Part shown: piece after piece, positions 829-42,322 of the stretch
How the letters are laid out: each line of letters opens with the position of its first letter
How positions within the stretch are numbered: position 1 is the stretch's first letter
Assembly (NCBI GenBank): GCA_026936335.1
Contig: JAPMXV010000077.1
Coordinates: forward strand, 44,276 to 108,275
DNA from: Mantamonas sphyraenae STR306
Lineage: Eukaryota > Protista > CRuMs
DNA: 64,000 bases
Direction of reading: 5' to 3'
The notes under the pieces: generated by a model
Database searches by the model: none
Told to the model about the DNA's origin: nothing
The model's input: the letters and a program-made list of their open reading frames with translations, nothing else
Program-made: the position numbers and the translations under genes

Positions 829-1712
829 TCACGCTCTGCACACTTCTCTGTATCTGACCAGATCATTCTTCCAGCCCCGTTCCCAGTGCAATGCTGGTGC
901 ATCCTTGTGTCGCCTTCCTTCGCCATGGACACCCAGTGAGGCCAAGAACACAGCACCTTCCCGGGAAACATCCTCCACCCAATCATCCTTCTCCAACGTC
1001 GTATCCTCACTCGCGCAGCACTTGCAAGGGAAGATACACATCATTGCCTCGTCGACACCCCACTTGATCCTATCCTGCTGGTTTGCAGGGATCTTCTGCC
1101 GCACCAACTCTGTCTCCTCCCACCTCTTCTGCACAGCCTTTCCACACTTGCTTCCTCCCATGGCCTCGCACATCCCTGTTGTCACCAGCATGAGTGGGCT
1201 GCGTGTCACCACTTTCTCCAACAGGCGCGGATCCTTGTGCTGCTGCCACAGGTCCCACCACATGCTCGCTTTCTCCCTCACTTTGCCATCGAATGCATGC
1301 AGCTTCTCAACTGCCGTCGAGCTGTCCAACGCGTGCGGATACGCGTATGTTTCCTTCTCCATGTCCTGAAGGCACCAGAACCGGAGAAACCCTTCAAGAC
1401 CCTGCTTCTTCCTTGGTCAATCACCCCATGGAGGACTCGCCGTCTCAACTCCTCGCCAACCCACCACGTCTCATCATTTCGAACAATCACATTGCTCAGC
1501 ACACTCACATGAAACCCGTCGTCCAGCAGCTGCATCCACCTTTCATCAGTGGCCACTTCTCTCTCCCTCCAATGTGGCCCCACCCTGTCCGTGTCCACAA
1601 GCTTGCCCACCTCCACCCCATCCGGGTCATCCAATCCCTCCATGGCAACAACGATAACCTCCGAGTCGTCGCATGGGTGCCTCTCGTACACTGCTCTGCC
1701 CATCCGTTGTGG
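829..1712 (-). pseudogene. Truncated, frameshifted relic of the F-box-like helical-repeat family (C-terminal third only)
   Basis: ORF 1278-1763 (PCDDSEVIVVAMEGL...DERWMQLLDDGF) and ORF 829-1362 (LDSSTAVEKL...DWVEDVSREGAVFLASLG) align in two different frames to the C-terminus of the genes at 1760 and 5563. There is no N-terminal part, and the relic begins just past the stop of the upstream paralog. Confidence 0.8.
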
Positions 1713-1759
1713 TGCAAGTGAGTGTCGAGGTGCGCAGGTCGGGAACGGGATCACACCAA

Positions 1760-4700
1760 TCATTTTCCATTGCCTTCAAACGCAGTGTACACTTCCCTCA
1801 ACTGTTCCAGTTCCTCTGTCTGATCATCTTCAAATGCTATGTCACAGTATCGCATGTCAAACACTGTGATCTCCAGAGACGCCAGAAAGTCGGCTCCTTC
1901 CCTACTTACCTCATCCGTCCAGTCCTCCTCATCAAACTCGTACCCACACTCCAACAGCACTTGTAAACGGATGAGGGTATCAGCAGAACCACGCGATGAC
2001 AGCACATCGTGGGCCCATTCGCACCAGTTCTCCCGTTGTGCCTGGCACTCCTGGCGGACTTGCTCCACCTTTTCCCACCTCTTCTGCGTCTCCTCACCAA
2101 GTTTCTCTCCTTCCAAGGCCTCGTACATCCCTTCTGTCACCACCATGAATGGAATGCGCCTCACCAGTGCCTCCAGGACCTGTGGATCACTGCAACGCAG
2201 CAGCAGCTCCAGCAACAACCCTTTGTCCACTCCACCATGGATTTCAAGCAGCTTCTCAAGTGCTGTCGAGCTGTCCAACTCGTACAGACACGCATATGCT
2301 TCCTTCAAAGCTGTTCGACTGGTTCCCACCAACTGCTTCAACACGAGCATCATTCCTTGGTCAATGAGCCCATGGACGACTCTCCTCTGCAGCTCAACAC
2401 TGTACCTACAGAAACCGGTCATTCCAGGCATCATGGTCCCCAGTACCTTCACAGGGAATCCATCGTCCAGCAGCTGCATCCACCTTTCGTCAGTAGCCAG
2501 TTCTTTCGACCACCACCCTGTCTCCAGCTCTTCTGCGTTCACGAGCTTGCCCACCTTCACCACATCCGCGTTCTCCAGCCCCTCCATGGCCACTGCTACC
2601 ACCTCCGAGTCGTTGCAGGCGTCTTTCCTCACTGTTCTGCGCATCCACTGCCGCACGTAATCCACAAAGGCCTCAGCCCCGTTCTCTCTGCACACGCTCA
2701 CACATCGATTCACCTGCTGTTGCCAGCGTTCTTGCAAGCATGGCCGAGTGGCTCCGGTCCATACGGTCTCCTTCAGCTCGTATGGCACCCACAATGACCT
2801 GTCGTCGTCATCGAACTTGTCCTTGGACAGCAGGCTAGGCAACAGCCTTTCGTCATGGTCAAATCTGTAGCACTCGAGTATGGTCTCGACCTCCAGTTGC
2901 GCCGTGTGCCGCTTCACTGCCCACAGTACAGCATCCCTGCGTTCCCAACCAGCATACGGCCCCGTAGTCTCAAGGGCACGCGTGAGCAATGTCATCAAAT
3001 GCTCCTGCGGAAGCACCATACCATTGCTGTCAAGGGCCGCCCTCAGATCCATTGGGTTGGCTATGTCAACAACCCTCCCCCATGCCCCACGTTCAGCCAG
3101 CAAACGAATGGCTTCCATGTGCGGACATACCTTGTACACCTTTGCCACAGTGTCGTCATCCAGCTGGCCCCCGTGTTGGTCCAGCACCCACTCACTCGCT
3201 TTCCAGTATTCTTTTCTTCGTGCACGCATGAGAAATCGCATCACATGCTCATGCGGAAGCACCATATCATTGCTGCGAAGGTGCGCCCTCAGGTCCTCAG
3301 GGTTGGCTGTGTCAATAACCATCTCCCATGCCTCACGTTCCACCAGCAAACGAAGAGCTTCCTTGTTTGGATGTATCTTGTACACGTGCGCCACAGTGTC
3401 GTCATCCAACTGTTCCCTGTGTTGGACCAGCATCCACTTCACAGTGCGACTTGCTTCACAGAGATCTTTTGCGTGTTTTCTGTGTGCATATTTGGGATCC
3501 CTGATCGCTTTCGAGCGATCGGCACTTTGGGCACACTCGAGAATTCGCAGCAAAAGCTCCTTCGGAAGCACAATGCCCATCGTGTCAAATTCCGCCCTCA
3601 GAACATCAGGTCTTGTTGCGCCAACAATCGCCCCCCATGACTTCCGTTCCACCAGAACAGCCAGAGGTTTCGTGAAGAAACCGCGAGGATACCTTCCATG
3701 TCTTTTCCACAGCCGTACCACGGCATCGTCGCCCAGTCGTGACACGATTTGAGGCCTGTTGACAATCCACGACGCCGTTTCGAAATCACTGCGTGCATCC
3801 TGGTACAAGATATAGGCATGGTGGGCAAGTGTGGCCACGGTCTTCTCCTCACCCTCCACCAGGACGAGCGCCCTTATCAGATCACGGGCAGGCGTATTCT
3901 TGGCCAGAGCATCCATGGGTAGCGTGGACAGAACACATGAAACCAGTGCGTGGTTGTTCAGGACCCAACACATCTCCTGCAACAGAGTCAAGTTCTTCGA
4001 CTCACAGACAGTTTGCAACGCCTTTGGCCATTCAGCTTCTGGCAACGCTGCTGGAATGAGGGGAAGCATGCCTCTACATCCGCTCAGCCCCATCGCCATT
4101 GCTTCCTTCACACCAGCAAGGCCGTGTCCCACCAACACCTGCGTCAACGCATTGCCGGTGCACCGCAGCTCATGTCGGCTACGACGGACATACTTCACAT
4201 ATGCCTCTATGTTGGACAGTGGAACATCTGCCAGTGTTCGTCCCATCGAGTCTGGCTGACCCAGTCGTCCCCTCACTCGGGGAAGCTGCGCCACGTTGCC
4301 TTTGTAAACCGCGGCCATGCTGGCATTCACCTCGAATGATTGCAGGAGACTCTTCGGAGCACCTGATGCCAACAACACGCCGTACCGTGCCTCGTGGAAG
4401 GGCACACATGCATCAACGACCTTCATCAAGGCCTTGTTGGTGAACTTGCTCAGCGATGTTCGCCGCAACACACACTGCAGCGCAGGAAGTGAGCGTCCAC
4501 ACACAGGTGGCAAATCCTCCACACGCATGCGTTCAGGCACACTGTTTCCCGCAAACAGCTCAAACAGGGCCCTGTTCCAGTACAGCCGGTTCAGCCGTGG
4601 CACCCGGAGCCGTTTGTGTCCAAACTTGACCACCACACCACCAATCTCGCCCAATGTGGACACAAGGGTGCTTCTCAGTGGCTGGTTGTCCACTTGGTAC

Positions 4701-5206
4701 AGGTCGCCCATGTCCACCATGTGTGTGTTGATGGAGAAGAGGGCAAGGGCGGCACCGGCGTCCAAATGAGGCACCACACGTTCCCACACCTCCACTGGCA
4801 CCTGTGACAGCAGTGTCTCCATGCGGGAGGGCGGAGTTCTCTGACGACGGGCGCGACGGGGGCGACGTGAGGCAGTGCTCTGTGCTGTGTCACCCAGCTG
4901 CTGCTGGTGCTGGTCAGCGGATGCTGACCTGTCAAAAACACATCCAGCACACACGGGTTCACCATGGCCATGTCAGCACAGATAAAGGGTGCGGTGGGGA
5001 AGAATGGTTGATTGCTGTGCTTCCTACCTGCTTGTCTGTGTGTCGTCCACCGTCATGTCGTCTGTGTGGTTGGTGAGCTCTGCCGATGCTCGCACCTTGG
5101 CCACCCGCTGACGTTTGGGTGCAGGGGTGGCGTCCACCAATTGGCCATCTTCCTCATCAACCACATCCTCATCCTCTCCATCCACTGTGCTACGCTTGCG
5201 GGACAT
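1760..5206 (-). CDS. F-box-like protein A: basic NLS-like exon 1 (MSRKRS...PKRQR), F-box-like motif, three ~82-aa helical repeats; exons 5206-5028 and 4928-1760
   Basis: LLSQVPVEVWERVVPHLDAGAALALFSIN matches the F-box pattern L..lP.Ev...i...L. A phase-2 intron at 5027-4929 (GTAGGA..GCTGAC..TTTTTGACAG) joins ORF 5024-5302 to ORF 1760-4954. The paralog has the same intron. Confidence 0.75.
4929..5027 (-). other. Spliceosomal intron, 99 nt
   Basis: GT donor, CTGAC branch site and GACAG acceptor. It restores the frame and is conserved in paralog B at 8420-8518. Confidence 0.75.
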
Positions 5207-5562: not shown

Positions 5563-8500
5563 CTACATTCCAAACGCACTGTACACTTCCCTCAGCCATT
5601 TCAGTTCCTGTGTCTCCTCATCGAAAGGTGCTGTGTTGCAATATGGTCTGCAATACACTCTGATCCCCAGAGACGCCAAAAAGTGGGCTCCTCCCTTGCT
5701 TATCTCACGCGTCCAGTCCTTCTCGCCAAACTCGTACCCACACTCCAACAGCACTTGTAACCAGATGAACATATCATCAGAATACGATGACAGCATCTTG
5801 CGAGCCCATTCACTCCAATCCTCCCGTTGTTCCTGGCACTCCCGCCGGACTTGCTCCACCTTGTCCCACCTCTTCTGCGTCTGTTCACCAAGTTTCTCTC
5901 CTTCCAAGGCCTCGTACATCCCTTTTGTCACCACCATAAATGGGATGCGCGACACCAGCTCCTCCAGGACCTGCGGATTCTTGTGCAGCAGCAGCAGCTC
6001 CAGCAGCATCTCGTAGCCCACTTCATCGTGGATTTCAAGCAGCTTCTCAATTGCCGTCGAGCTATCCAACTCGTACAGATATGCACATGCTTCCTTCACA
6101 GCCGTTTGCCTGGTTCCCACAAACCGCTTTAACACGGGCCTCATTCCTTGGTCAATGAGCCCACGGACGATGCGCCTCTGCAGCTCAACACTGTACTCAC
6201 GGAAACCGGTCATTCCAGGCATCATGGTCCCCAGTACGTTCACAGGGAACCCATCGTCCAGCAGCTGCATCCACCTTTCCTCAGTGGCCACTTTCTTCGA
6301 CCACCGCCATGCCTCCAGCTCTTCTGCGTTCACGAGCTTGCCTACCTCCACCACATCCTCGTTCTCCAGCCCCTTCATGGCCACTGTCATCACCTCCGAG
6401 TCGTTGCAGGGTTCTTTCCCCACTGTTCTGCTCATCCACTGCCGCACGTATTCCACAAACGCCTCAGCCCCATTCTCTCTGCATACACTCACACATCGAT
6501 TCACCTGCTGTTGCCAGCGTTCTTGCACGCTCGTCCGAATGGCTGCGGCGAGTGCAGACCGCTTCAGCTCGGATGGCACCCACAATGCCCTGTCGTCGTC
6601 ATCGATGTTGTCCTTGGACAGCAGGCTAGGCAACAGCCTTTCGTCATGGTCACACCTGTAGCACTCGAGTATGGTCTCGACCTCCAGTTGCGCCGTGTGC
6701 TGCTCCACCGCCCACAACACATGCTCATTGCGTCCCCACTCTTGAGCATACGGCCCCGTTTTCTCAAGGGCACGCGTGAGAAATGTCATCACATGCTCCT
6801 GCGGAAGCACCATACCATTGCTGTCAAGGACCGCCCTCAGATCCGTAGGTTTGGCAATGTCAACAACCGTCTCCCAAGCCTCACGCTCCACTAGCAAGCG
6901 AATGGCTTCCATGTTCGGGTGTGTCTTGTAAACGCTCGCCACCGTGTCTTCATCCAGCTGCTTCCCGTGGTGGACCAGCACCCACTCACTCGCTTCCCAG
7001 TATTCTGTTCTTCGTGCACGCTTGAGAAATCGCAACACATGCGCCTTCGGAAGCGTTTTACCCTTGCTGTCAAGTTCTTCAGTCAGTTCACTTGGTCTTG
7101 CAATGGCTTCCTTCCAAGCCTCCCGTTCCACCAGAAGAGCCAGAAGATCCTTGAGATGATACTCTCCACACAGCTGTACCACTGCATCGTGGTCCAGTTG
7201 TGACACGAATCGAGGTGTGCTGGCAATCCACCTCTCCATTACCCTATCTCCCCGTGCAGCCTCGAAGAGCAGTTTGGAATGTTCGACAAGTGTGGCCATG
7301 GCCTTCTCCTCGCCCTCCACCAGGATGAGTGCCTCGTGCAGTGCATAGGCTGGTGCATTCATGACCAGCGCTTCAATTGGTAGCGTGGATAGCACACATG
7401 AAACCAGGTCATGGTTGTCCAGCACATCCGGCAACTGCCGCATCAGAGTCAAGTTCTTCTCCGCACAGAGTGCTTGCAACGCCTTTGGCCATTCGGCTTC
7501 TGGCAACATTTCTGCAATGCAGGCAAGCATACCTCTACACCCGCTCAGTCCCATTGCTATTGCTTCCTTCACACCCGCAACGCCGTGTCCCACCAACACC
7601 TGCGTCAACGCTGAACGGGTGTGCTCCACCCGCCCTCTGTCTTCCATTGCATACTTGACGTGTGCAACGATGTTGGACAGTGGCACGTCTGCCAGTGTTC
7701 GTCCCATCGAGTCCGGCTCACCCAAGCACACGTACTCGACCCCACTACCGGTGTCCCCATCGTAAATCGCATCCATGTCGGCATCCAACTCCATCTCTTC
7801 CACGAAATACTCCGGGGCACCTGCTGCCAACAAAACAGCTCCCTTCGCCTCAGGGAAAGGCAGACATCTCTCGACGACGTCCATCAGGTCGTAGCAATCT
7901 ACCTCGTCGTCCCAACTGTAGTCGTACCAACTGCCGTCGTTGCAACTTTCGGCCAGTGTCGTTCGCCGCAACACACACTGCAGCACAGGAAGTGAGCGTC
8001 CACACACACGTGGCAACTCATCCACATGCATGCGTTCAGGCACACTGCTTTCCCCAAACAGATCAAACAGGGTCCTGTTCAAGTACAGGCGGTTCAGCCG
8101 CGGCACCCGGTGTCGTTTGTCGCCAAACCAGACCACCACACCACCAATCTCGCCCAATGTGGACACAAGGGTGCTCCTCAGTGGCTGATTGTCCACTTGG
8201 TACAGGTCGCCCATGTCCACCATGTGTGTGTTGATGGAGAAGAGGGCAAGGGCGGCACCGGCGTCCAAACGAGGAACCACACGCTCCCACACCTCCACTG
8301 GCACCTGTGACAGCAGTGTCTCCATGCGAGAGGGCGGTGGTATCTGGGGACGGGAGCGACGTGAGGCGGTGCTCTGTGCTGTGTCACCCAGCTGCTGCTG
8401 GTGGTCGCGGGATTCCGACCTGTCAGAAGCACACCCAGCACACACGGGTTCACCATGGCCATGTCAGCACAGATAACGGGTGGAGTGGGTGAGAATGGGC

Positions 8501-8688
8501 GGCTTTTGTGCTTCCTACCTGCTTGTCTGTGTGTCGTCCACCGCCATGTCGTCTGTGTGGCTGGTGAGCTCTGCTACCGCGCGCATCTGCTGACGTTTGG
8601 GCGCTGGGGTAGCGTCAACGGACGGGTTCTCTTCCTCATCAACCTCAACTCCATCCTCTCCATCCACCGTGCTACGCTTGCGGGACAT
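5563..8688 (-). CDS. F-box-like protein B (tandem paralog of A; two helical repeats); exons 8688-8519 and 8419-5563
   Basis: The N-terminus is near-identical to A and the C-terminal third is highly similar. It has a 99-nt intron at 8518-8420. Confidence 0.75.
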
Positions 8689-10812: not shown

Positions 10813-12934
10813 ATGAGCACAATCGCACGGGGCAAGGGCAAGGGCAAGGCAGGCAGCAGCAGCAACACCAACCATGGGATGGGCAGTGCGCATGGTCTGT
10901 CCACAGATGGACCTGACCATTACCTGCAGTCGGAGCGCACAAAGGCGTACGGCCCTCTTTCGCCGCTGCAGGGCAAGGCAGGACCCGACACATCGCCGGC
11001 AGTGCGCACGCTGTATCATGACATGTACAAGAGTGGCCTGTGTGCCGATGTGGAGATTGTGCTGGAAGGACTGGATGGGGCGGGTGAGTTGGAGGAAGGG
11101 GAAGAAACGAGAAGCAAAAGCAAAACGCGGGGCAGCAGTGTGGCACACACACACACACACTGTGGGTTGCTGACACCAAAAGGGGGGATATTGGATGACG
11201 AATGATGACGGGACACACCTACCCGACAGATGGGGAGGAGTTGGGTGGGAAGGATGTGGTGCTTCGTGCACACCGTTCGTTTCTGTGTCTGCACAGCGGA
11301 ATGTGGCGGTATCTGCTGGAGGTTGAGGACGGGGCAGCAGCGTCGTCGGGGGCAGCGGTGTTGGAACACAGCAGGGAGGATGGACAGGGAGGAGGGATGT
11401 TTCGAATGGTGGTGAAGCGGGGCACACAGAGTGTGGGTGTGTTGCGTGCAATGGAAGTGGCGGTGGGGTGGTGCTACGGCGGTACCCTGCCTGTGACCAA
11501 CGTGGAGCTGTGTTACAGTCTGTTGGCCGTGGCACAGTTCTGGCTGATGCCCATGCTGACGGAGCATGTGATGCAGTGGGTGGGACAGAGGCATGATGCA
11601 GAGACACTGGTGAGGATGTGTCGTGGGGGCAGTCTCGTGGGGGCCATGGGCGTCGCCGAGGTGGTGCACTCCAATGTGTACCATGCAAGTGTGTTGCGGG
11701 TGGCAAAGGAGTGGAGCAAGGTGGCAGATGCGGTGAGTGGTGGCAAGGTGGCACGTGGGGCGTTTGGGTTTATGCGGGGCTGTGTGTTTGTGGCGATGGT
11801 CAAGGTGGCGTTGGAGCAGCATGGGGAGGAGGGAGTGGACAAGGGGAAGCTGGCACAGGTGGTGGGTGGGTATTTGGAGAGTGTGGATGTGGAGGAGATG
11901 GTGGAGGCGGAGGAGGTGGAGTACTTGAGTGCGTTGTTGGAGGGCGTTCGGCACAACGAGGAGATGGGATTGTTGAAGGCGGCACTGGCAACAGGTGCGA
12001 GTGAGGATGTGGTGAGAGGATTGTGTGTGAAGATTGCAGGGAAGCTGGAGGTGTTGCAGCGGGATGGGCGCGTGAACCTGAGCGGGCTGCCGGTGTGGGT
12101 GGCAGAGCTGATCCTGAGTGCGGATGGGATCGATGTGAAGAGTGAGGACGATGTGCTGGAGATTGTGGAGAGATATGTGGAGGAACATGATGGGGAGGGG
12201 GAGGAGGAAGGGTGGGAGAGGCGGATGTATGGGTGTGTGCGGTTTGGGCTGCTGGGCTCGGAACGTCTGGAAGGGATGCAGGAGGACGGAGAATGGGACA
12301 CGCGGTATGTGGACTTGATGGTGTTGATGAATGGTCTGCTAGATGTGCTGCGCATAATCAAGGGCCAGGAACCAGTTCACAGCAAGAAACGAGCATTTGA
12401 AGTAGATGTTGTCCCAAGCCTGGACTGGGACCGGGTCGACCGAAGCCGAGGAACATTCACAGAGGACAGCCTGGATAAGACTGGAGGTGGTTGGACAACA
12501 TGGATTGGCAAGGAGAAGCTGCGCTCGGGACAGCGATGGAGCGTACGAGTGGACCGATTGTCCTACGGCATGATCGGAATCTGCACCAGCACGTGCGATC
12601 TCACAAGCAACGCCCTTGGTAAGTCATCACATCCCAGAGACACCATACACCGAGTACTGACACCATATGGCTCACAGGGACCAAGCAGGGAAGCTACAGC
12701 TGGAACTGGAACGGCTTGCAAGGACAAATGTTCAAAAATGGAAACAACACCAAAATCAACACGCGCTTCAACCAAGGCGACATTGTGACGGTGGAGCTGG
12801 ACACCAGGGCCCACACACTGAACTTCTCCCGCAATGGCAATGTGGACGCTATCATCGACAACATTGACGACGACACATGGTACCCTGCTTTCAGCTGCCA
12901 GAGTTCCAAGATGACGATTGTGCCCACACCATAG
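10813..12934 (+). CDS. BTB/POZ-BACK-SPRY protein 1 (putative Cullin-3 adaptor); exons 10813-11083, 11230-12618, 12678-12934
   Basis: BTB motif: CADVEIVL...VLRAHRSFLCLHSGMWRYLL...WCYGG...LLAVAQFWLMPML. BACK-like motif: LILSADGIDVKSEDDVL...CVRFGLL. SPRY motif: WSVRVD...MIGI...FNQGDIVTVELD...LNFSRNG...WYPAFS. Introns GTGAGT..GACAG (11084-11229) and GTAAGT..CTGAC..CACAG (12619-12677) join three ORFs in frame. Confidence 0.85.
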
Positions 12935-19668: not shown

Positions 19669-19732
19669 CTGCACCCAAAATTGGACGACTGCCCGAGGCC
19701 CAGACGCGCCCACCCTTGTCCAGATTGTACCC

Positions 19733-30063: not shown

Positions 30064-30806
30064 GGACCAGTCATCGAAGCCAGCTGGTGGCAATCAAGCA
30101 CGCAAGTGCCAGATCGATGACGACGACGACGTAGTCCACACTACAGGCAGCGATACCAGCACGCACGATACCAAACGGCAGCGTGTGTAGGCAAAGTCTC
30201 CTTGCAAGCGGTCACACCTTGTCTTCTGTGCTCCATCCACCAGGAGTGTAGCACATGGCAAGCGTTGGTTGGGATGTGGAAATGTGGCAGTGGTGTGTGG
30301 CTGGTGTCGACGACCAGAAAGACGCCGGAAGATTGCGCGGGGCTCCTGCTGTGCCACAGTACGCACGCAGCAAGGGGAATCCTCCAGGGAGGCAGATGGT
30401 ATCCTGCAAAGTATGGGAGGGTAACGGGCCAGCAGGTTTGGCATGTTGTGGTGACACCCGGGGCAGCGTCAACTTCTGCCAGGACCAGTGCCCTGCGCTG
30501 CGTGTTTATGCAGATACAACACCAACGAACAGAACCAAATGGTCATGGGCATGCACACACGAAAACGAGCCCCCGCACATTGTTTGTGGTTGCATCGAGG
30601 ACGACGCAGCATTTGGGTGGGAATTCCACCCTTGGATTGCGACTGCATGCCGGGAAGACCCCGTGGTGGTTGCGATCCCGATGCATGCAGTTTGCCAACA
30701 CACTGTACTTGATGGTGATTCCACTGGCAAGAATGACAGTGGTACAACACAGCACACAAAGAGCAAGAGAGACCACACCACAACCCAACACACCCAAGAG
30801 CAAGAG

Positions 30807-31145
30807 ATGAGCACACGCGTTTGCCAGACTTGCCACCAGACCACAGACCGAACCCAGGATTGTCGCTATGGCCAGCGATGCCGGTATGGGCCCGAGCGAT
30901 GCCGGTTCCACCACTGCCACCACCACCACCACCGGCCACGATGGAGTGGTGAGCACAGCCACCGGACGCAGCCGCAGCGGCAGCAGCAGCAGCAGAGACA
31001 CACGAAGAAGCAGCGGGAGAAGAAGCAGGAGGCAGGAGACGAGGAGCAGGCAGAGGGAGCAATGACCGAGCAGCTGATGCAGGTGGTCGTCACCGTCAGC
31101 ACAGCTGTGGTCACCAGCATCCTCCGCTCACGCGGATGGATCTGA
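30807..31145 (+). CDS. 112-aa zinc-module protein, near-identical to 27071-27397
   Basis: Differs mainly by an in-frame 12-nt poly-Q expansion. Confidence 0.65.
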   Translation: MSTRVCQTCHQTTDRTQDCRYGQRCRYGPERCRFHHCHHHHHRPRWSGEHSHRTQPQRQQQQQRHTKKQREKKQEAGDEEQAEGAMTEQLMQVVVTVSTAVVTSILRSRGWI

Positions 31146-31412
31146 GCCAACCTGCCCTCCCTGGACGACACACGTGGACGAGGAGAGGAGAAGGAGAGAC
31201 TGGGAGAGAGATGGAAGAGAGAAAGTGAGGATTCTCTCTTTTTATCCCTTTTGGCTTGTGTCTTGGTTCCCCGCACCACCCCCAATGTGTGGCAATGACA
31301 CCAATCAAGAGATGAAAAAAAAAAGAAAGAACCCACCCACAGATGTGTGCGTGGGGTGGGGTAGGGTGTGGGTGTGGGTGTGGGTGTGTGTGTTGGTGCT
31401 GGTCATGGTGGA

Positions 31413-31625
31413 TCACCATCCATTGTCTCGGGCCATCCGCTGCAGACCTCGCACCAGCTGCACTCGGTCATCCCCCGACGCTCGCCCAGGGTCGATGTGG
31501 GCGTTGGCCAGAAAGGCGCGGTTGCCTCGGGCCAGGTTGGGAGCTCCGTCTGCGTTGATGGCCATCCACCGGTAGTCACCGCCGGTGGTCCAGACTCGGG
31601 CGCGTCGCTGTCGCTCGTTGGGCAT
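31413..31625 (-). CDS. 70-aa microprotein, same protein as 27662-27874
   Basis: Only synonymous differences from the first copy were seen. Confidence 0.6.
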   Translation of the reverse strand: MPNERQRRARVWTTGGDYRWMAINADGAPNLARGNRAFLANAHIDPGRASGDDRVQLVRGLQRMARDNGW

Positions 31626-32178
31626 CTTGTGTGTGTTTGCTGTGGGTTGGGGTTGGGTAAGCGGGGTGCGCTGGTGTCATTGTGGGTCCCATGGTGCCAT
31701 TTTGTACCCGGCAGGTGCCACCCACATGCTTCTGGGATCGCAGCCATGGCTTTCTTGGTGTGCAGTTGCCCATCGACCTCCACCGCCAGAATTCCTGATT
31801 TCCCACACCCCACCCGCCAGTCGACGAAAACGGACACTTAGGTAGCATTGGGTGGTCTCACACGACGCACATGTTCCATGGGAGCCCATTCATGCAGTTC
31901 ATTGCATGACACATGTGTCTGTGCATTGTCCAAGTGGAACGGGTGGGTGGAACAAGAAGATGGCTTTGGCCACGACGATGGGTTTGTAGAACGGTCGTGG
32001 TGGTAGCGGATGCACGTGTGCATGTTGGAATCATGGAATGGTGTGGTTTTGGTGGAACTCGGGTGCAGTCCTCGGAGTCGATCGACTGCACTTCTGGCCA
32101 GTTCCCTTTTGCACGGACGGATTGCGCCGACTCACTCAACACAACTACCATCCACACGACCAACCCATCCAACAAGCG

Positions 32179-33357
32179 ATGAGCACTCGCGTTTGCCAAA
32201 CTTGCCACCAGACAACAGACCGAGCCCAGGATTGCCGCTTTGGCGAGCAATGCCGCTTCGGCCCCGAACGATGCCGCTACCATCACTGCTACCACCGGCG
32301 TGGATGGCGTAGTGAGTGCAAACACCGCAGGGAGCACCAAAGCTACAAGGAGTGGCAGATGGAGCAGCCCTGGCGACGGAAGCAGGATCAGCGAGCACGG
32401 GACAACGAGCGGGAGGCACAGGACACCGAGCAGGCAAGGAAGATCCAGCTGCTGTATGAGGCTCCCAATGGCCGCACCGGTGCCATTCTCCTCACAGAGA
32501 ACAGCACCATCGCCACGCTGCACACATCACTTGCTGACCGCGTGAGGATTCCCGAGGACAGGCTGTGGATGACACACCATGGGAAGCCGCTGCGTCCGTC
32601 GACATCGATATCAATCCACGACTACAACATCGATGAGGGAAGCATCGTCCGCATCATGCTGCGCAACTCGTGGCACCACGAGCCGCATGACACCGAGGAG
32701 ACAGAGACAACCACGACACCGGCAGCCACACAATTCACATGTCCAATCTGCGACGACGACGAGGTCGACCCGTCCACCGAGGCCACGGCGATGGGATGTG
32801 GTCACACGTTCTGCCACCAGTGCTGGTCGAAACACATCGAGGCACGCCTGGGCGAGGCACCCCAGATCCGCTGTCTCGAGAGTGGCTGCGGAATGGTGGT
32901 GGACAGTGGTACGGTCAGCCGTGTGGCAGATCAGGAGCTGTGTGACCGCTACGAGCACATCTGCCTCGGCAAGGCTCTGGACGAGCTGGGATTGCTGTAC
33001 TGCGCCAACACAGAGTGCAGCAACGCCTTTGAGGCCGACGCTGGCGACAGCTACGTCACCTGTGCCGCCTGTGGACACAGCACATGTGTGTCATGTCGTG
33101 CAGCGTGGCACACCGGGATGACATGTGCTGAGGCCAGCGATGCATCGTCCATCCAGGATGTGGCATCCCTGAAGACCATTGCCCAGACGACAAAGGCATG
33201 TCCCGAGTGCAACGAACGCATCGAGAAGAACGGTGGGTGCAAGCACATGACGTGCAAGTGGTGTCAGCACGAGTTCTGCTGGGGCTGTTTGCAGCCATAC
33301 ACACGCACAGCAAGGAGAGGTCTCAGTGTACAATGTCTGGACACGTGTACAGTGTAG
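32179..33357 (+). CDS. Zinc-module-Ubl-RBR E3 ubiquitin ligase
   Basis: Leader: MSTRVCQTC...CRYHHC. Ubl: IQLLYEAPNGRT...IPEDRLWMTHHGKPL...HDYNIDEGSIVRIMLR, with no diGly. RING1: CPIC..CGHTFCHQC..CLESGC. IBR: CANTEC..CAACGHSTCVSCRAAWH..C. RING2: CPEC..IEKNGGCKHMTCKWCQHEFCWGC. Confidence 0.9.
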   Translation: MSTRVCQTCHQTTDRAQDCRFGEQCRFGPERCRYHHCYHRRGWRSECKHRREHQSYKEWQMEQPWRRKQDQRARDNEREAQDTEQARKIQLLYEAPNGRTGAILLTENSTIATLHTSLADRVRIPEDRLWMTHHGKPLRPSTSISIHDYNIDEGSIVRIMLRNSWHHEPHDTEETETTTTPAATQFTCPICDDDEVDPSTEATAMGCGHTFCHQCWSKHIEARLGEAPQIRCLESGCGMVVDSGTVSRVADQELCDRYEHICLGKALDELGLLYCANTECSNAFEADAGDSYVTCAACGHSTCVSCRAAWHTGMTCAEASDASSIQDVASLKTIAQTTKACPECNERIEKNGGCKHMTCKWCQHEFCWGCLQPYTRTARRGLSVQCLDTCTV

Positions 33358-33596
33358 CACAGGAGCAGTGAGGAGGAAATGGTGTGTCTGGCTGCGGATG
33401 GAAGAGAGAATGGAGCGGGTGAGGTGATGCATTCTCTCTTTGTTGTCACTCTTGCTTGTGTCTTGTTCCTCCGCACCCCAATGTGTGGCAATGACCAACC
33501 AAGGTATGAAAAAAGAAAGAACCCACCCACAGATGTGTGCGTGGGGTGGGTTGGGGTGTGTGTGTGTGTGTGTGTGTTGGTGCTGGTCATGGTGGA

Positions 33597-33782
33597 TCAC
33601 CATCCATCCAAGCCGGAGACACGGAAGTCATCCCTCCACACCTCAGACACTCGCCCTGGCCAATGCCCTCGGAAGATGTGAGAATGGGCCAGAGAGGGAA
33701 ATCTGTCTGCGTTGGTGCTCCTGCTCCGGTCTCCACGGCTGGTGGTCCAGGATGGGGCGTGTCGCTGTCGCTGGTTTGGCAT
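33597..33782 (-). CDS. 61-aa microprotein, diverged member of the MPN...GW family
   Basis: MPNQRQRH..WTT...NAD..P.LA...DGW*. The flanks are the same as for the other two copies. Confidence 0.45.
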   Translation of the reverse strand: MPNQRQRHAPSWTTSRGDRSRSTNADRFPSLAHSHIFRGHWPGRVSEVWRDDFRVSGLDGW

Positions 33783-34342
33783 CTTGTGTGTGTTTGCTGT
33801 GGGTTGGGGTTGGGTAAGCGGGGTGCGCTGGTGTCATTGTGGGTCCCATGGTGCCATTTTGTACCCGGCAGGTACCACCCACATGCTTCTGGGATCGCAG
33901 CCATGGCTTTCTCGGTGTGCAGTTGGCCCTCGTCCTCCACCGCCAGAATTCCTGATTCCCCACACCGCACCCGCCAGTTGACGAAAACGGACACTTGGAT
34001 GGCATGGTATGGCCCCACACGTCGCATGTGATCCATGGGAGCCCATGCGTGCGGTTCATGGCATGACACATGTGCCTGTGCATTGTCCAGGTGGATCGAG
34101 TGGGTGGAAGCAGACAAATGTCCCCACCGCCATGTCCCTTTGTGCACCACCACCCTCTCCCCCCTTGACACTGCCTCTGTGCATTGAATACACTGCACAT
34201 GGCGGTCAATCACATGTGCCTGCACACAAGGCTGCACATGCAGTGTGTGTGTGCAGTCGACTGTGCCCAGTTGAACATTAAAAGGATCCAAGCGACCTCC
34301 CGCTGCGACAAACCAACCATCCCAACCCATCCAACCCAATCC

Positions 34343-35217: not shown

Positions 35218-38200
35218 ATGAGCACAAAGGAAGACAGCAGTGCATTGTGTAGGCGGTTGTTGGACTGTGAGGGTGAAGATGACCAGAGGAAAGCGTTGAA
35301 AGACTGTGGGTTCCACAAGAAGGTCATCGATGCCTTGTTGGAAGAGAATGCGTACGGTGCTGCGCTGGTGCGGCTGTATCAGACGGAGGACGAGTGGATG
35401 GAGCTGCTGGATGATGCTGGGATCAAGCGGGAGGGGGCACGAGGACAGCGGCAGATCGAGCTTTGGGAGACGTTTATTCTGGACTGCGAGACCAAGGCAG
35501 GCATGGCGGTGGTGGAAGACGGGGGAGATGAAGAGGAGGAGGAGGCTGGTAAGTGAGAGGAGAGAGGAGGTTTGGGGGGTGGAAAGGTTGGGGGAGGCGC
35601 TGACACCTGCCCGCGTGCTTGAGCAGAAGGGGCGTCCAGCTCGTCATCGGCAGGGAGTGTCATGGGCATCATGGACTATTCACGTGTGATGCAGATGAGT
35701 GTGGTGCGTGGAGGGGATGTGTCGTCGGCAGGTTCGTCGAGTGGAGGAGGGGCGAAAGGGAAAGTGGGAGTTGCAAAGGAAGGGCAGATTGTGCCACACA
35801 AGCGAAACACGCGGGAGAGGTGTGGATGGGACGAGGGCGGGATGAGCGATGTGCGTGTGCTGCTGCTGGGTTCGGATGGACAGGCACGAGGAAAGGTCAA
35901 GATAAGCTGTGCAGAAGAGCAGAGGGCGGTGGAAGCAGCGCGACGAGTGGGCGGCTTGACAACGAGTGCTGTGGGGGCGGCTGAACAGGTGGACTTTGTG
36001 GCGGAGATTCGTTCATTGAAGGCACCGATGGTACACATCATGACACACATGGGGGTGGCAGTGGTGGAGGGAGAGGATGCCTCTGTGACGAGAAAGACAC
36101 TTGTGGACTCGCTGCGAGAAGCGAGTCCCGTGGCCGTGTTTTTGAACGGATGCAGCAGTGGAGACATGGCCATGGAGATCAATGACCATGTGCCACTGGT
36201 GATTGGGTACACCGAGGCAGTGGACGATCATGCGGCTGTGGACATGGCCAAGGCGTGGTACGAGAACATTGGGAGTGGAGAGACGGTGGGAGAGGCGTTC
36301 CGGGCTATGGTGGACGCAGGAGGGGAGAAAGAAGGGTCAAAGGCACTGTTGTGTCTTTGGCAGGGCATGGAAGACACAGTGTTGGTCAACACGAGTGGAA
36401 ACAAGGCACAGGATGGGTTCTCCAGGAGGCGTGTGGACAATCTGGGCAAAGCACGAGAGCTTGTGCGACGAGAGGAGGTGCTGCGTGAGCTGGAGGAGGC
36501 AGAAGGGGTGGTGGTGGTGTGTGGTGCGAGGGGCATGGGCAAGACAAGCGTAGTGGAGATGCATGCGCAGGAGGTGAAGGAGAAGGGTGGCACGGATGTG
36601 GTGTGGTGGTGTGCGGGACAGAGCAGAGACTTTGGTGAGTGACTTGCTGCAGTTAGGTGTGGCATTGGGCGTATGGAGTGTGGAACAGGTGCAGTCGGCT
36701 GAGAAGGAGGAGGTGCGAGAGGGAATGGCAAAAAGGGTGATGCAGGCGTTGGATGGACAGCGGTGGATGTTGGTGATGGACGGGGTGGAGGCATGGGCGG
36801 ATGTCAAGGCGTTTGTGCACGCAGGAGGTTGTGTGGTGATGACGACATGGCGGGATGGGATATGGGACAAGCGGGTGGTGGACACTGTGGTGAGGGTGGA
36901 TGTGATGCATGATGATGAGGTGGATGCCGTGTTTGCGAGTGAGGGTGTGGTGGTGGATGGGAAGGAGGAGGAGGAGGCGTATGGGGAGCTGAAGAGGATG
37001 CTGGATGGGATGGCATTGGCTGTGCGACAGGCAGCGGCAGTGATTGGAGAGTGGGGACAAGGTGGATCGGTGCAGAAGTACGTGAAGCGACTGGGACGTA
37101 GTCTGAGGCAGCTGGGGAAGGAGGTGGAGAGCGATGTGTACAGTGGAACAGCGCTGAGTGTGTGGCAGATTGCGATGGAAGAGGCATCGGAGAGGAACGA
37201 GCATGCAGCAAGGTTGATGCAGAGCATGGCGCTGTTGGATGGACAAAATCTGCCAAAGAGGCTGCTGGTGACTCTGATGGAGCAGATTGCGGGTGTGGAC
37301 GACAAGGAAGAGGCAGAGGAAATGGCAGAGGAGGCATTGGAGGCATTACAGAGAGTGTCGCTGGTGCAGCGGGTGGTGGGGCAGGAAAGGAGTGGGTGGA
37401 AGGTGCATGGGCTGACGCAGGTGATGGCAAGGGGAGGACAGGTGGTGGTGTTGGATGGAGAGGGAGGTGAAGAAAGGGTGGTGGGTCTGAAGCAGGTGTT
37501 GAAGATGATGCAGAAGGAGTTTGCTTTCGATTCGAGTGAGCCGCTGGACGAACTTGCATGGCACAGGAGAATGCTGGTGCATGGTGAATCTGTGTGGAAT
37601 GCATGTCACGAGGTGTGCGCACGCAGAAGGGATGTGGAGGACATGTGCTGGGTGGGACAGAACGTGGCGGATGTGCATGACTGGATGGGGTCTTTCGGAG
37701 CCGCAGAGGGGTGGATTGAGGAGGTGATGAGAGTGCAGAAGGAAGCTGGGGAGGGGGAAGAGAGCAAAGGTTGGGCAAGGAGTCTGTTTCTGACTGCCGC
37801 GATTGCATTGGCCAAAGGAGAGTACGCTCGGGCACTGCAGCTGCAGGAGCAGGCACTGGGAATCAGGCGACGGGTGCATGGTGGGGATGAGCACCCTGAT
37901 GTGGCATTGAGCATCCACAACATGGGACAGGTGTACCATGCCAAGGGAGAGTACGATCGGGCACTGGAGCAGTATGAGCAGGCACTGGGGATCAGGCGAC
38001 GGGTGCATGGTGGGGATGAGCACCCGAGTGTGGCCACGAGCATCCACAACATGGCCATGGTGTACGAAGCCAAGGGAGAGTACGATCGGGCCCTGGAGCT
38101 GTTTGAACAGGCACTGGGGATCGAGCGACGGGTGCATGGTGGGGATGAGCACCCGGATGTGGCATCGAGCATCAACAACATGGCCATGGTGTACGAAGCC

Positions 38201-41200
38201 AAGGGAGAGTACGATCGGGCCCTGGAGCTGTTTGAACAGGCACTGGGGATCAGGCGACGGGTGCATGGTGGGGATGAGCACCCGGATGTGGCATCGAGCA
38301 TCCACAACATGGCTGGGGTGTACGATGCCAAGGGAGAGTACGATCGGGCACTGGAGCTGTATGAGAAGGCACTGGGGATCTGGCGACGGGTGCATGGTGG
38401 GGATGAGCACCCGGATGTGGCATCGAGCATCCACAACATGGCCATGGTGTACGAAGCCAAGGGAGAGTACGATCGGGCACTGGAGCTGTATGAGAAGGCA
38501 CTGGGGATCAGGCGACGGGTGCATGGTGGGGATGAGCACCCGAGTGTGGCCACGAGCATCCACAACATGGCCATGGTGTACGAAGCCAAGGGAGAGTACG
38601 ATCGGGCCCTGGAGCTGTTTGAACAGGCACTGGGGATCGAGCGACGGGTGCATGGTGGGGATGAGCACCCGGATGTGGCATCGAGCATCAACAACATGGC
38701 CATGGTGTACGAAGCCAAGGGAGAGTACGATCGGGCCCTGGAGCTGTATGAGAAGGCACTGGGGATCAGGCGACGGGTGCATGGTGGGGATGAGCACCCG
38801 AGTGTGGCCACGAGCATCCACAACATGGCCATGGTGTACGATGCCAAGGGAGAGTACGATCGGGCACTGGAGCTGTATGAGAAGGCACTGGGGATCGAGC
38901 GACGGGTGCATGGTGGGGATGAGCACCCGGATGTGGCTACGAGCATCCACAACATGGCTGGGGTGTACGATTCCAAGGGAGAGTACGATCGGGCACTGGA
39001 GCTGTATGAGAAGGCACTGGGGATCAGGCGACGGGTGCATGGTGGGGATGAGCACCCGGATGTGGCCACGAGCATCAACAATATGGCTGGGGCGTACCAT
39101 GCCAAGGGAGAGTACGATCAGGCACTGGAGCTGTATGATCAGGCACTGGAGATGAAGCGACGGGTGCATGGTGGCGATGAGCACCCGGATGTGGCATCGA
39201 GCATCCACAACATGGCTGGGGTGTACGATGCCAAGGGAGAGTACGATCGGGCACTGGAGCTGTATGAGAAGGCACTGGGGATCAGGCGACGGGTGCATGG
39301 TGGGGATGAGCACCCGGATGTGGCCACGAGCATCCACAACATGGCTGAGGTGTACAAGGCCAAGGGAGAGTACGATCGGGCACTGGAGCTGTATGAGCAG
39401 GCACTGGGGATCAGGCGACGGGTGCATGGTGGGGATGAGCACCCAGATGTCGCCACGAGCATCAACAATATGGCTGGGGTGTTCCATGCCAAGGGAGAGT
39501 ACGATCGGGCACTGGAGCTGCATGATCAGGCACTGGTGATCAGACGACGGTTGCATGGTGGGGATGAGCACCCGGATGTGACCACGAGCATCAGCAACAT
39601 GGCTGGGGTGTACAAGGCCAAGGGAGAGTACGATCGGGCACTGGAGCTGCATGAGCAGGCACTGGAGATCACGCGACAGGTGCATGGTGGGGATGAGCAC
39701 CCTTCAGTGGCCACGAGCATCAACAACATGGCTGGGGTGTACAAAGCCAAGGGAGAGTACGATCGGGCACTGGAGCTGCATGAGCAGGCACTGGGGATCT
39801 GGCGACGGGTGTATGGTGGGGATGAGCACCAGAATGTGGCATCGAGCATCCACAACATGGCTGGGGTGTACGATTCCAAGGGAAAGTACGATCGGGCACT
39901 GGAGCTGTATGAGCAGGCACTGGAGATCACGCGACAGGTGCATGGTGGGGATGAGCACCCTTCAGTGGCCACGAGCATCAACAACATGGCTGGGGTGTAC
40001 AAAGCCAAGGGAGAGTACGATCGGGCACTGGAGCTGCATGAGCAGGCACTGGAGATCGACCGACGGGTGCATGGTGGAGATGAGCACCCGGATGTGGCCA
40101 CGAGCATCAACAACATGGCTGGGGTGTACAAAGCCAAGGGAGAGTACGATCGGGCACTGGAGCTGCATGAGCAGGCACTGGGGATCGGGCGACGGGTGCA
40201 TGGTGGAGATGAGCACCCTAGTGTGGCCACGAGCATCCACAACATGGCTAGTGTGTACAAAGCCAAGGGAGAGTACGATCGGGCACTGGAGCTGCATGAG
40301 CAGGCACTGGGGATCAGGCGACGGGTGCATGGTGGGGATGAGCACCCGAGTGTGGCCACGAGCATCCACAACATGGCTAGTGTGTACAAATCCAAGGGAG
40401 AGTACGATCGGGCACTGGAGCTGTATGAGAAGGCACTGGGGATCGCGCGACGGGTGCATGGTGGGGATGAGCACCCGGATGTGGCCACGAGCATCCACAA
40501 CATGGCTGAGGTGTACCAGGACAAGGGAGAGTACGATCGGGCACTGGAGCTGTATGAACAGGCACTGGGGATCAGGCGACGGGTGCATGGTGGGGATGAG
40601 CACCCGGATGTGGCCACGAGCATCAACAACATGGCTGCGGTGTACAATGCCAATGGAGAGTACGATCGGGCACTGGAGCTGCATGAGCAGGCACTGGGGA
40701 TCTGGCGACGGGTGCATGGTGGGGATGAGCACCCGGATGTGGCCACGAGCATCAAGAACATGGCTGGGGTGTACATTGCCAAGGAAGAGTACGACACTGC
40801 TCTGCAACTGTTGCTTGTGGTTGAAGCACTTCAAACTGCTCTTCTTCCACGCAACCATCCAGGTCTTAGTAACACAATATCAGCTCTCTTTGACCTGAAC
40901 CAGCTTAACACAGCGCGCATGAGTGACGCTGAGGGCACCCTCCGATCCATCCGCTCAAAGAAGAGTGTTCGATTCACGCTGGCCAATCATGCCTTGTCCC
41001 TAGCCCAGCTCAGCGCAGGGGACCCCAATTCTGCGTTGGCCACTCACAGCAGAGTGGTTGCGGACATACAACGTCGCCAATCCTCCTCCTCCTCCTCCTC
41101 CTCGACATGCTCGCTGCCCAAGGTGGTCACTGACTTTGTTCAACGACTCGTAATCACCCATTCCTTCACCCTGCTCACATGTGACCTCCTCCCATTGTGG

Positions 41201-41488
41201 TTTGAGCACGTCTCGGTCGACCAACTCCTATCGTGGACACCAGCCGTCCTCCCTACGTCTCTGAACTCCCTCCTCCAACACATCCCAGATACAATTGCCA
41301 CTGTGGACGCCGCTGAAGCGCTGATTGACTCCCGTGCTCATCTGTATGCACCCTCCCAACACAAGGAACTCATGCACACCCTGGCATCCAAGGCCATGCG
41401 AGCGGGTGACCTAGAACGAGGCAAGCAGCTGGCTTCTTCATCCCAACGAATGCGACGAGGTCAAGAGGATGACAGTGAGGAGTGCTGA
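35218..41488 (+). CDS. NLR-like STAND protein: SAM-like + CHAT (caspase-like) + NB-ARC + 23 TPRs; intron 35549-35626; frameshift at ~36625 as assembled
   Basis: SAM-like: ALLEENAYGAALVRL...LLDDAGIK. CHAT: VHIMTH...VFLNGC...VIGY...AAVDMAKAWY...VGEAF. NB-ARC: Walker A GARGMGKTS, Walker B MLVMDGVE, GMALAV, and MHD-like VHGLTQ. The TPRs are 129-bp units. A phase-1 intron GTAAGT..GCTGAC..GAGCAG joins the first two ORFs. Confidence 0.85.
37814..40780 (+). repeat. Coding tandem array, 23 x 129 bp (43-aa TPR)
   Basis: Unit consensus KGEYDRALELxExALxIxRRVHGGDEHPxVAxSIxNMAxVYxA, counted from the translation. Confidence 0.95.
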
Positions 41489-41741
41489 TGCATGTTGCCT
41501 CTAATGCATCCTCTCATTTCCTCGTGTTGAGCCGCCGATCTTCACTCTGGGCTGTCGTCGTCCCCGTTGCACTCCCCGCAGGCCAGTGGCGGCCAGTCCA
41601 CAATCCCTGCATGGAAAAGCAGTGCCACCTCAGATGCACTCTGTGCGTAGGTGGCTGGTGGATGGTGAGACGCAGGGACACGATCGCGCTGAATGTGGTC
41701 CCGCATCACGCATCGCCAAATAAAACGGCCTTGTCCCTCGC

Positions 41742-42322
41742 TGAGGCATGTTGTGGACAGGCCTCCACTGGCTCTGCCGGCAGTGCTACGACGACAACGA
41801 TGCCAGTCCCGGGGTGGGTACGAGGGGATGAGAGGAATGCATGAAGAGCGAGCACAGACACGTACACATACTCTGTCCCTTGTTGCGTCCTCTTGCAAAT
41901 CGATCACCGTGTGAGGGAAGGATGTGTTGAAGAGATCAGCCAGCAGCTGCTGAATGGGTCGCTGCAGTGTCCATTCTGGAGTGTGCTGCAGAGAGATAGA
42001 GATGAAAGACACACCAGCATGCACTGCACCCACATCCCACCCCTCCCTCCCTCCCTCCCTCTCCATGCAGACCAGTGCCACCCCACAGACGCACACACAG
42101 GGCCATCACCAGTCACTGCACGCAGTGCATGGCGGCATAGACGACAATAGTCGCCTCTCAACGTGTCGCCACCGCATGTGTGCAATGACCGTCTCACATG
42201 GCCCTGATTCCCGTGCGTCTGTGTGATCACTGGCCCAAACAGGGGGGATTGGTGGGGTGGGGTGGGGTGGGGGCAAGTGGGTGTGTGGAAGGAGGGCGTG
42301 TTTCATCCCCAACCACCACCCA
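41742..42322. repeat. Direct repeat right of the NLR
   Basis: Matches the repeat at 34425-35020. Confidence 0.85.

Follow-up and report, generated by a model that had tools for sequence, protein, structure and literature searches.

Background

[quoted passage not shown] Cell-autonomous immunity of protists is poorly mapped, and eukaryotic defence islands are an open hypothesis, raised for fungi (PMC10197012).

We analysed a window of 64,000 nucleotides, in which positions 829-42322 had been proposed to form a clustered, rapidly diversifying immune system that routes its targets to ubiquitination or proteolysis (the original prediction). Judged from sequence, this block looks like one fungal-style immune-receptor gene accompanied by a few ubiquitin-tagging genes, each defence-like when taken singly. 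Diversifying ubiquitin adaptors beside a protease NLR of fungal type, whose TPR groove also diversifies, would offer concrete candidates for a guilt-by-association test. If the genes share only a region of high turnover, the block is an example of ordinary birth-and-death evolution.

Results

Local segmental duplications cover 60% of positions 829-42322 as compared with 0% of the neighbouring 42323-64000 (a tandem array aside), which bears out the predicted duplication and gives the block a sharp edge within the window. The claim that most genes lie in recent duplications does not extend to the two RBR genes, which share only ~24% identity and are not recent duplicates. The block ends with the right copy of a 600-bp direct repeat (34428-35020 and 41743-42324, 89% identical), which flanks the NLR-like gene on both sides. 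Gene blocks are flanked by direct repeats at several places; for example, ~700-bp copies at 18966-19677 and 20934-21615 stand on either side of a CXC/TCR and HNH-like gene. Three tandem segmental units and the beginning of a fourth occupy 23721..34109 (units ~23721-27961, 27962-31707 and 31708-33864). Local exchange between direct repeats, by unequal recombination and by gene conversion, built the block; it duplicated, truncated and shuffled lineage-specific genes.

Gene models were verified for ATG, stop and GT-AG introns; the introns are regular and have branch points. Disrupted reading frames comprise one probable pseudogene fragment and two frameshifts, one in the NLR-like gene and one in the 5´ zinc module of the vWA gene; both frameshifts had been missed in the original prediction. 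The genes reduce to ~11 lineages, 3 (at most 5) of them ubiquitin-related. Profile and structure searches recovered both RBRs, both SPRY domains, both LRR-ankyrin proteins, the vWA domain and the CHAT-NB-ARC-TPR gene; the F-box was not recovered, and HNH, BTB and BACK matched weakly. Spliced models were searched one exon at a time, with lower sensitivity for BTB and SPRY, and the NLR-like gene was searched as two separate pieces. Rfam gave no match, telomeric repeats were sought without success, PADLOC returned weak matches at P-loop and ankyrin level only, and no related locus was found in viral contigs, metagenomes or plasmids.

The NLR-like gene (35218..41488, plus strand) comprises a helical, possibly SAM-like exon 1, the predicted CHAT, NB-ARC and TPR parts, with 23 TPRs of 43 aa (37892-40858, all in one exon), and an orphan tail. 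CHAT matched Pfam below the cut-off (E=4e-4) and PDB entry 8TL0 at E=9e-5, in an alignment that takes in the Cys motif; His and Cys are both kept (the His motif by eye). NB-ARC carries Walker A (GxxGxGKT), Walker B and an MHD-like motif, and matched NF040586 on two pieces (E=2e-28 and E=0.01; profile positions 9-64 and 67-328), with a score far under the cut-off (99 vs 300 bits). A word-index search limited by query length found no homolog of the NB-ARC region, a blank that reflects the sensitivity limit. The model of exon 1 has pLDDT 79, and its highest-probability fold match is a SAMHD1 entry (probability 0.54, TM 0.42, E=2.2). Among the best PDB matches of the TPR array are kinesin light chains and a TPR structure from Podospora, 4Y6C; TPR matches in bacterial genomes are generic. 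Neither a gasdermin-like nor any other CHAT substrate was recognised near the gene. In the assembly the reading frame breaks within NB-ARC at ~36615-36631, and model length mod 3 equals 1. An 18-nt mini-intron candidate fails to restore the frame. Another one of 22 nt lacks a consensus branch point, falls well short of the 58-154 nt of the other introns and would delete NB-ARC-like coding sequence. Because both candidates fail, we prefer a frameshift, which may be an assembly error or the mark of a pseudogene.

Two tandem LRR-ankyrin genes were confirmed in their repeats (LRR_6, E=4e-117 and 1e-51, with ~2 ankyrin repeats) but not in their F-box. LRR-ANK1 (24331..26454, plus strand, 679 aa) has 16 RI-type LRRs of 28 aa, ~2 ankyrin repeats and one F-box-like helix, and LRR-ANK2 (28567..30063, plus strand, 470 aa) has 10 LRRs, ankyrin repeats and such a helix at its extreme C-terminus; both helices are without Pfam or PDB support.

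The two predicted BTB-SPRY genes are tandem paralogs, BTB1 (10813..12934, plus strand; exons 10813-11083, 11230-12618 and 12678-12934; 638 aa) and BTB2 (13482..15622, plus strand; 642 aa). SPRY is clear in both (E=2e-9 and 8e-9), whereas BTB (E=0.005; the domain is interrupted by an intron and exons were searched singly) and BACK (E=0.002-0.02; BTB1 E=0.009) match only weakly, below cut-off. Their 5´ halves are nearly identical, synonymous sites and intron 1 included, while divergence is 9-13% in BACK, in SPRY and in the non-coding flank on the 3´ side; the pair is thus a mosaic of conversion or recombination. Conservation of the BTB part spans synonymous sites, so it stems from conversion and gives no evidence for selection. 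The SPRY domain overall is no more diverged than the non-coding flank, but one hotspot holds 14 differences within 30 nt, every one in amino-acid-changing codons (p=2e-4).

Both RBR genes were confirmed by IBR matches (E=4e-16 and 3.5e-7) and by a RING2 catalytic Cys-x-His motif. RBR2 (16282..17457, minus strand, 391 aa) has three Cx2C-CCCH modules before RING1-IBR-RING2; RBR1 (32179..33357, plus strand, 392 aa) has one, followed by Ubl and RING1-IBR-RING2, and matches ARIH1 at E=2e-27. A word-index search limited by query length gave no homolog of RBR1, again a limit of sensitivity, RBR1 having clear PDB homologs. RBR1 stops ~20 aa past RING2 and has no Ariadne domain, the part through which ARIH ligases connect to Cullin complexes. 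In its tandem unit it occupies the slot held in two neighbouring units by mini-genes (27071..27397, plus strand, 108 aa, and 30807..31145, plus strand, 99% identical to the former), which consist of a Cx2C-CCCH module and a low-complexity tail. Head-to-head with RBR2 lies the vWA gene (17663..18689, plus strand, E=1e-12), with an intact ORF from 17850 and a frameshifted 5´ zinc module that is an inverted 94% copy of the first RBR2 module. Both RBRs, the vWA gene and the two mini-genes thus share one Cx2C and CCCH zinc module at their head, a feature newly observed here.

Of the three F-box-like genes predicted, two proved to be orphans without profile or structure support and the third a frameshifted C-terminal fragment without F-box. 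FbA (1760..5206, minus strand; exons 5206-5028 and 4928-1760) encodes 1115 aa with a basic N-terminus, an F-box-like motif seen by eye from 4822 and a predicted helical solenoid with internal ~80-aa repeats. Its paralog FbB (5563..8688, minus strand; exons 8688-8519 and 8419-5563; 1008 aa) is 70% identical and has fewer internal repeats; both begin with a basic, NLS-like stretch. The fragment of this family (829..1775, minus strand, ~280 codons, frameshift near 1356-1374) aligns to FbA residues 762-1040 by tblastn with 52%/37% identity, has no start codon and is probably a pseudogene. FbA had no Pfam or PDB match and no homolog among 1.84 billion representatives; FbB had none in the word-index search limited by query length, where a blank, as for the NB-ARC region and RBR1, marks the sensitivity limit and does not bear on kin that are longer, shorter or fused. 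Neither the N-terminal motif of this pair nor the C-terminal one of the LRR-ankyrin pair matched an F-box in Pfam at E<=10 or in PDB. The AlphaFold model of FbA (pLDDT 49) places three short helices at the motif with low confidence, and its fold search gave loose matches to giant-virus helical repeat proteins (TM<0.2, not meaningful).

The predicted HNH-like gene (19733..20341, plus strand, 202 aa) carries a CXC/TCR domain (TCR, E=2e-4); HNH matched weakly in PHROGs (E=0.04) and not in Pfam. By eye, the N-terminus of the 523-aa orphan at 21800..23371 (minus strand) resembles a signal peptide; this protein, which is not ubiquitin-related, also shows a faint filamin/Ig-like stretch (E=0.14).

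Per-domain dN/dS, the check proposed for the original prediction and made here within one genome, gave omega >1 at the TPR groove and the LRR concave face. Groove positions 2, 5, 6, 9, 12 and 13 were chosen in advance from the canonical groove, with the register checked against consensus TPR; they carry 17 non-synonymous events on 14.5 sites (omega ~2.3; p=0.012 vs the synonymous rate and p=3e-4 vs other positions). Concave LRR positions have omega ~1.6 (p=0.03) and the remaining LRR positions 0.39 (p=2e-4); LRR2 alone gives p=0.15. These tests use one genome and recombining repeat units, and the p-values are modest and uncorrected, although several tests were run. Surface codons also show a raised synonymous rate, and surface-biased change can also stem from relaxed constraint on exposed residues. 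Other paralog comparisons (BTB, SPRY, orphan pair, LRR-ANK C-terminal) are near-neutral, with omega 0.65-0.9. Diversification at ligand faces is shown for the TPR and LRR receptors and for one SPRY patch. That paralogs differ mainly in binding surfaces is true of the TPR units, the LRR units and one SPRY patch, but not of the BTB pair overall.

Discussion

We favour, with slightly better than even confidence, a birth-and-death block of genes in an intron-poor microbial eukaryote; it carries surface-diversifying receptors probably used in non-self or conflict recognition. As predicted, several genes are built like non-self receptors and bear their evolutionary signature (STAND-TPR, LRR arrays, SPRY, surface-biased change). 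The repeat receptors change in the manner of fungal NLRs and nematode Cullin adaptors, probably for such recognition, and each would have its own output. Binding of a ligand in the TPR groove would lead to nucleotide exchange and oligomerisation of NB-ARC and then to cleavage of a substrate by the CHAT protease, as in fungal CHAT-NLRs; this step requires that the frameshift be an error of the assembly. BTB-BACK-SPRY proteins would act as Cullin-3 adaptors that choose substrates via SPRY, the RBRs as stand-alone E3 ligases, possibly brought to RNA or ribonucleoproteins by their CCCH fingers, and the orphan and LRR-ankyrin pairs are candidate SCF adaptors. Their co-location most likely reflects common residence in a high-turnover region and not a co-regulated pathway.

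An integrated defence island would have the NLR, adaptors, RBRs, vWA and HNH-like genes co-selected and co-regulated as one cell-autonomous pathway, coupled by the CCCH module. The sharp edge, the zinc module common to unrelated genes and the two-gene defence clusters of fungi, for which islands have been hypothesised (PMC10197012), argue for it, as do 4 of ~11 lineages confirmed as E3, adaptor or NLR (binomial P ~0.002-0.07 at a background of 5-15%, uncorrected for a window picked after the fact). We nevertheless find it distinctly unlikely. Tandem duplicates and unconfirmed F-boxes swell the gene count, the sole clear immune-type gene is frameshifted in the assembly with no CHAT substrate recognised nearby, RBR1 has no Ariadne domain, and unrelated genes (a filamin-like secreted protein, mini-genes) are interspersed. 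Of the original prediction, receptor-like anatomy, surface-biased change and the sharp duplication edge are supported; the single system routing targets to ubiquitination or proteolysis finds no support in the present analysis. Quite improbable, too, is a true protist island in which the portable Cx2C-CCCH module would be a shared RNA-sensing or coupling tag, beside a SAM-like-CHAT-NB-ARC-TPR receptor and Cullin adaptors, all co-induced on infection.

The whole-gene omega of 0.65-0.9 fits drift and counts, like the broken frame of the NLR-like gene in the assembly, against the favoured reading. A neutral gene nursery and graveyard, where duplicates drift under relaxed selection, many die, and surface variation means low constraint, would also accommodate the fragment, the frameshifts and a SPRY divergence not above that of the non-coding flank; plant species-specific F-box genes behave in the same way (PMC3030570). 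It is nonetheless unlikely given a TPR groove with omega >1, an LRR scaffold under purifying selection while the faces vary, long ORFs with intact splice sites, and retained catalytic residues of CHAT and RING2. Genes for F-box, BTB, ankyrin and RING proteins abound in giant viruses. An endogenous giant-virus segment, towards which the fold matches of the FbA model point without being meaningful, is extremely unlikely with regular GT-AG introns and branch points, no viral core gene recognised, an NB-ARC-TPR of cellular type, and no relative of RBR1, CXC-HNH, FbA/B or LRR-ANK in viral contigs. Expansions of F-box, ANK and LRR genes are known from intracellular microbes (PMC4209131), and a host-associated protist might export ligases and adaptors against its host or an endosymbiont instead of using them on invaders of its own cell. 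We regard this as very unlikely, for the ubiquitin and NLR genes have no signal peptide (by eye) and FbA/B start with a basic, NLS-like stretch.

The block can be set against several described systems. Like bacterial defence islands, it is a dense, sharp-edged array of fast-evolving conflict-type genes; unlike them, it consists of local paralogs and not of many unrelated systems, with clustering seen within the window. Bacterial proteins also supply the best profile match of the NB-ARC part, the TPR protein of the FxSxx-COOH system (NF040586), and the best structure match of CHAT, SAVED-CHAT (8TL0), but here the gene is spliced and eukaryotic, has no bacterial partners and scores 99 bits against a cut-off of 300. 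The RBRs share RING1-IBR-RING2 and the catalytic Cys with ARIH1/parkin-type ligases, and RBR1 has a Ubl as in parkin and HOIL-1; N-terminal Cx2C-CCCH modules and a missing Ariadne domain in RBR1 set them apart. [quoted passage not shown] Unlike in those accounts, the substrate domain here is SPRY, and the F-boxes have no profile or structure support.

Birth and death with diversifying LRR or TPR repeats outside animals and plants is shared with the NB-ARC-TPR and ROCO-LRR candidates of Ectocarpus (PMC3341825) and the NB-ARC-TPR of Acanthamoeba (PMC4053784). Here, however, the repeats lie in a single exon, which implies recombination within the exon instead of exon shuffling, and the effector is CHAT. 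From the NB-ARC-TPR NLRs of fungi with highly conserved repeats (for example Podospora Pa_2_10340) and their CHAT-NLRs (PMC4986451, PMC10197012) our gene differs by units of 43 instead of 42 aa, the extra helical SAM-like N-terminal exon, the frameshift, a host that looks non-fungal (RI-type LRR genes alongside) and the lack of a recognised gasdermin partner nearby. Otherwise the likeness extends to the layout of effector, NB-ARC and KLC-type TPRs, the high internal repeat identity (91% at nucleotide level), the variable concave-helix residues and the caspase-like CHAT effector.

Architecture of the block

Local duplications account for 60% of positions 829-42322 and for none of 42323-64000 apart from a tandem array; the edge of the block is therefore real. 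Direct repeats bracket the orphan cluster (253-505 / 10278-10521), the CXC-HNH gene (18966-19677 / 20934-21615) and the CHAT-NB-ARC-TPR gene, here called NLR (34428-35020 / 41743-42324). Three tandem units span 23.7-34.1 kb: units 1 and 2 each carry an LRR-ANK gene and a CCCH mini-gene, and in unit 3 the mini-gene slot is taken by the ligase gene RBR1, whose 5´ module and 3´ flank are those of the mini-gene units. The original prediction placed most genes in recent duplications; RBR1 and RBR2, however, are ~24% identical and hence no recent pair. Once duplicates are collapsed, ~11 lineages remain, with three confirmed or probable members of the ubiquitin system, two more possible ones and one NLR. 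Binomial odds of such ubiquitin/NLR content are ~0.002-0.2, depending on the assumed background and the items counted and uncorrected for the choice of this window after the fact.

The repeats around the orphan cluster hold GGCCAAAA-type short repeats inside and may represent the termini of a non-autonomous transposon; near 60100-60210 there is also a terminal-like stretch. Within the repeats beside the CXC-HNH gene lie small orphan ORFs (19181-19399 and 21141-21338, +; 72 and 65 aa, 65% identical). The NLR-flanking repeats contain short Cys/His-rich ORFs and are adjoined by a further inverted 73% copy (34369-34535 / 41509-41667). At 8900-10300 (-), ~1.4 kb with coding-like purine skew and a 213-codon orphan ORF (9172-9810) gave no Pfam match.

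Gene content

Both predicted RBR E3 ligases are real, with IBR matches of E=4e-16 for RBR1 (32179-33357, +) and E=3.5e-7 for RBR2 (16282-17457, -). RBR ligases transfer ubiquitin via the RING2 cysteine, and the catalytic residues of RING2 are kept. RBR1, laid out as CCCH-Ubl-RING1-IBR-RING2, lacks an Ariadne domain; the nearest match to its RBR part is ARIH1 (E=2e-27). RBR2 has no Ubl and is headed by three copies of the zinc module that RBR1 shares with the mini-genes, Cx2C + C-x5-C-x6-C-x3-H (weak zf-CCCH matches, best E=0.002). An inverted, frameshifted 94% copy of this module heads the vWA gene (17663-18689, +), whose domain match is solid, as predicted. The spread of the module is module shuffling by local recombination. 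RBR2 and the vWA gene stand head-to-head with 205 bp between them; their 5´ coding ends (17331-17457 / 17663-17790) form a 94% inverted repeat with each other, possibly a shared promoter or hairpin.

SPRY is clear in BTB1 and BTB2 (10813-15622), while BTB and BACK matches are weak in both; BTB-BACK proteins are Cul3 recruiters. The 202-aa CXC-HNH gene (19733-20341, +) has CXC/TCR and a weak HNH match. In the LRR-ANK genes (24331-31145, with mini-genes), the repeats are present (16 RI-type 28-aa LRRs in LRR-ANK1, 10 in LRR-ANK2, about two ankyrin repeats), but the proposed F-box is not confirmed. Their C-terminal motif and the motif of the orphan paralogs FbA (1760-5206, -) and FbB (5563-8688, -) look like F-box helix 1 by eye, yet neither gave a Pfam match at E<=10 or a PDB F-box match. 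Three F-box-like genes had been proposed; an F-box is confirmed in none, and the third (829-1775, -) is a frameshifted C-terminal fragment. No relatives of FbA were found among 1.84 billion representatives.

The NLR (35218-41488, +) has all the domains expected of an NLR-like STAND protein, namely CHAT, NB-ARC and an array of 23 TPRs (KLC-type, 43 aa each), but in this assembly it is frameshifted after Walker A and before Walker B. The pieces on either side match adjoining profile positions (9-64 and 67-328), which leaves no room for a normal intron. Its first exon is predicted to fold into a small helical domain, possibly SAM. The CHAT catalytic residues are kept, and no CHAT substrate was recognised. 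STAND-TPR proteins switch upon ligand binding and then activate an N-terminal effector.

GC content is 54-62% from end to end of the window, and no housekeeping genes were recognised in it. Genes have 0-2 short introns (GT-AG, 58-154 nt), the majority of which carry a CTGAC branch-point motif. Together these features suggest an intron-poor, probably unicellular eukaryote; the DNA does not appear to be human. The window's proteins have no entry in protein collections, and viral, metagenome and plasmid sets yielded no related loci; spliced genes were searched by reference exon by exon, and the NLR with its frameshift in two parts.

To the right, a gene for a ~1240-aa low-complexity protein (42983-46708, -) with a terminal DUF3825 (Pfam E=6e-7), a mostly bacterial domain, converges on the right flanking repeat of the NLR. 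A 1680-codon ORF (46641-51683, +) comprises 26 near-identical 144-bp (48-aa) repeats, open in one further plus and two minus frames, and a C-terminal domain without family match. Three orphan ORFs at 53424-58839 (+), with apparent signal or transmembrane segments, likewise matched no family. A spliced ankyrin-repeat gene (62103-63300, -; Ank_2 E=7e-9) lies outside the predicted block.

Divergence and its explanation

Paralogs had been predicted to differ mainly in binding surfaces. TPR, LRR and SPRY do diversify with a bias to the surface. Canonical TPR groove positions are 2, 5, 6, 9, 12 and 13; they were set before the test with register checked, per-column variability having already been seen, and each codon variant was scored once. 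Groove omega is ~2.3 against 0.7 elsewhere, among recombining repeats of one genome (uncorrected p=0.012 versus the synonymous rate, p=3e-4 versus other positions). All selection tests share this scope of one genome, recombining units and uncorrected p-values. Omega of the LRR concave face is 1.6 versus 0.39 for the rest (uncorrected p=0.03; single genes p=0.06 and 0.15), and a SPRY patch of 30 nt holds 14 differences, each in a codon whose amino acid changes (uncorrected p=2e-4). The rest diverge near-neutrally: FbA/FbB (omega 0.8), the LRR-ANK C-terminus (pN about equal to pS) and the BTB pair overall, to which the prediction does not extend. Between BTB1 and BTB2, the BTB domain hardly differs, synonymous sites and intron 1 included. 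BACK, SPRY and the non-coding 3´ flank, in contrast, diverge by 9-13%, with the differences spread equally over the three codon positions. The pair is thus a mosaic left by conversion, with near-neutral divergence.

Recombination drives duplication, shuffling and decay in the block. We somewhat favor the view that each of its genes would work on its own in non-self or conflict recognition, and that they would sit together because the region is one of high turnover. The observation in the original prediction is confirmed in part, and its interpretation supported in part; the coupling into one system that an integrated island would need is not seen. Such an island has no recognised CHAT substrate, no Ariadne domain on RBR1 to link it to Cullins, and unrelated genes interspersed, and we regard it as unlikely; a version joined by a shared zinc tag is slightly less likely still. 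Pure drift, a minor but better contender, accounts for near-neutral genes and broken copies, much as it does for plant F-box genes confined to single species (PMC3030570); the TPR and LRR pattern suits it less well. Exported effectors find little support and are improbable; viral origin, also with little in its favor, is the least probable of all.

Comparison with known systems

Defence islands are hypothesised rather than established in fungi (PMC10197012), and a limited literature search turned up none described for protists. New here are the way these genes are combined in an unsampled lineage, a portable CCCH module carried by RBR as well as vWA genes and, possibly, a predicted SAM-like-CHAT head on the NLR. 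Adaptors as immune receptors recall the nematode F-box/MATH-BTB hypothesis, as cited in PMC4334554. Gasdermins were proposed as cleavage targets of fungal CHAT-NLRs (PMC10197012). The NLR itself resembles both the NB-ARC-TPRs of Ectocarpus and Acanthamoeba (PMC3341825, PMC4053784) and the fungal NB-ARC-TPR receptors, whose repeats are concerted and positively selected (PMC4986451).
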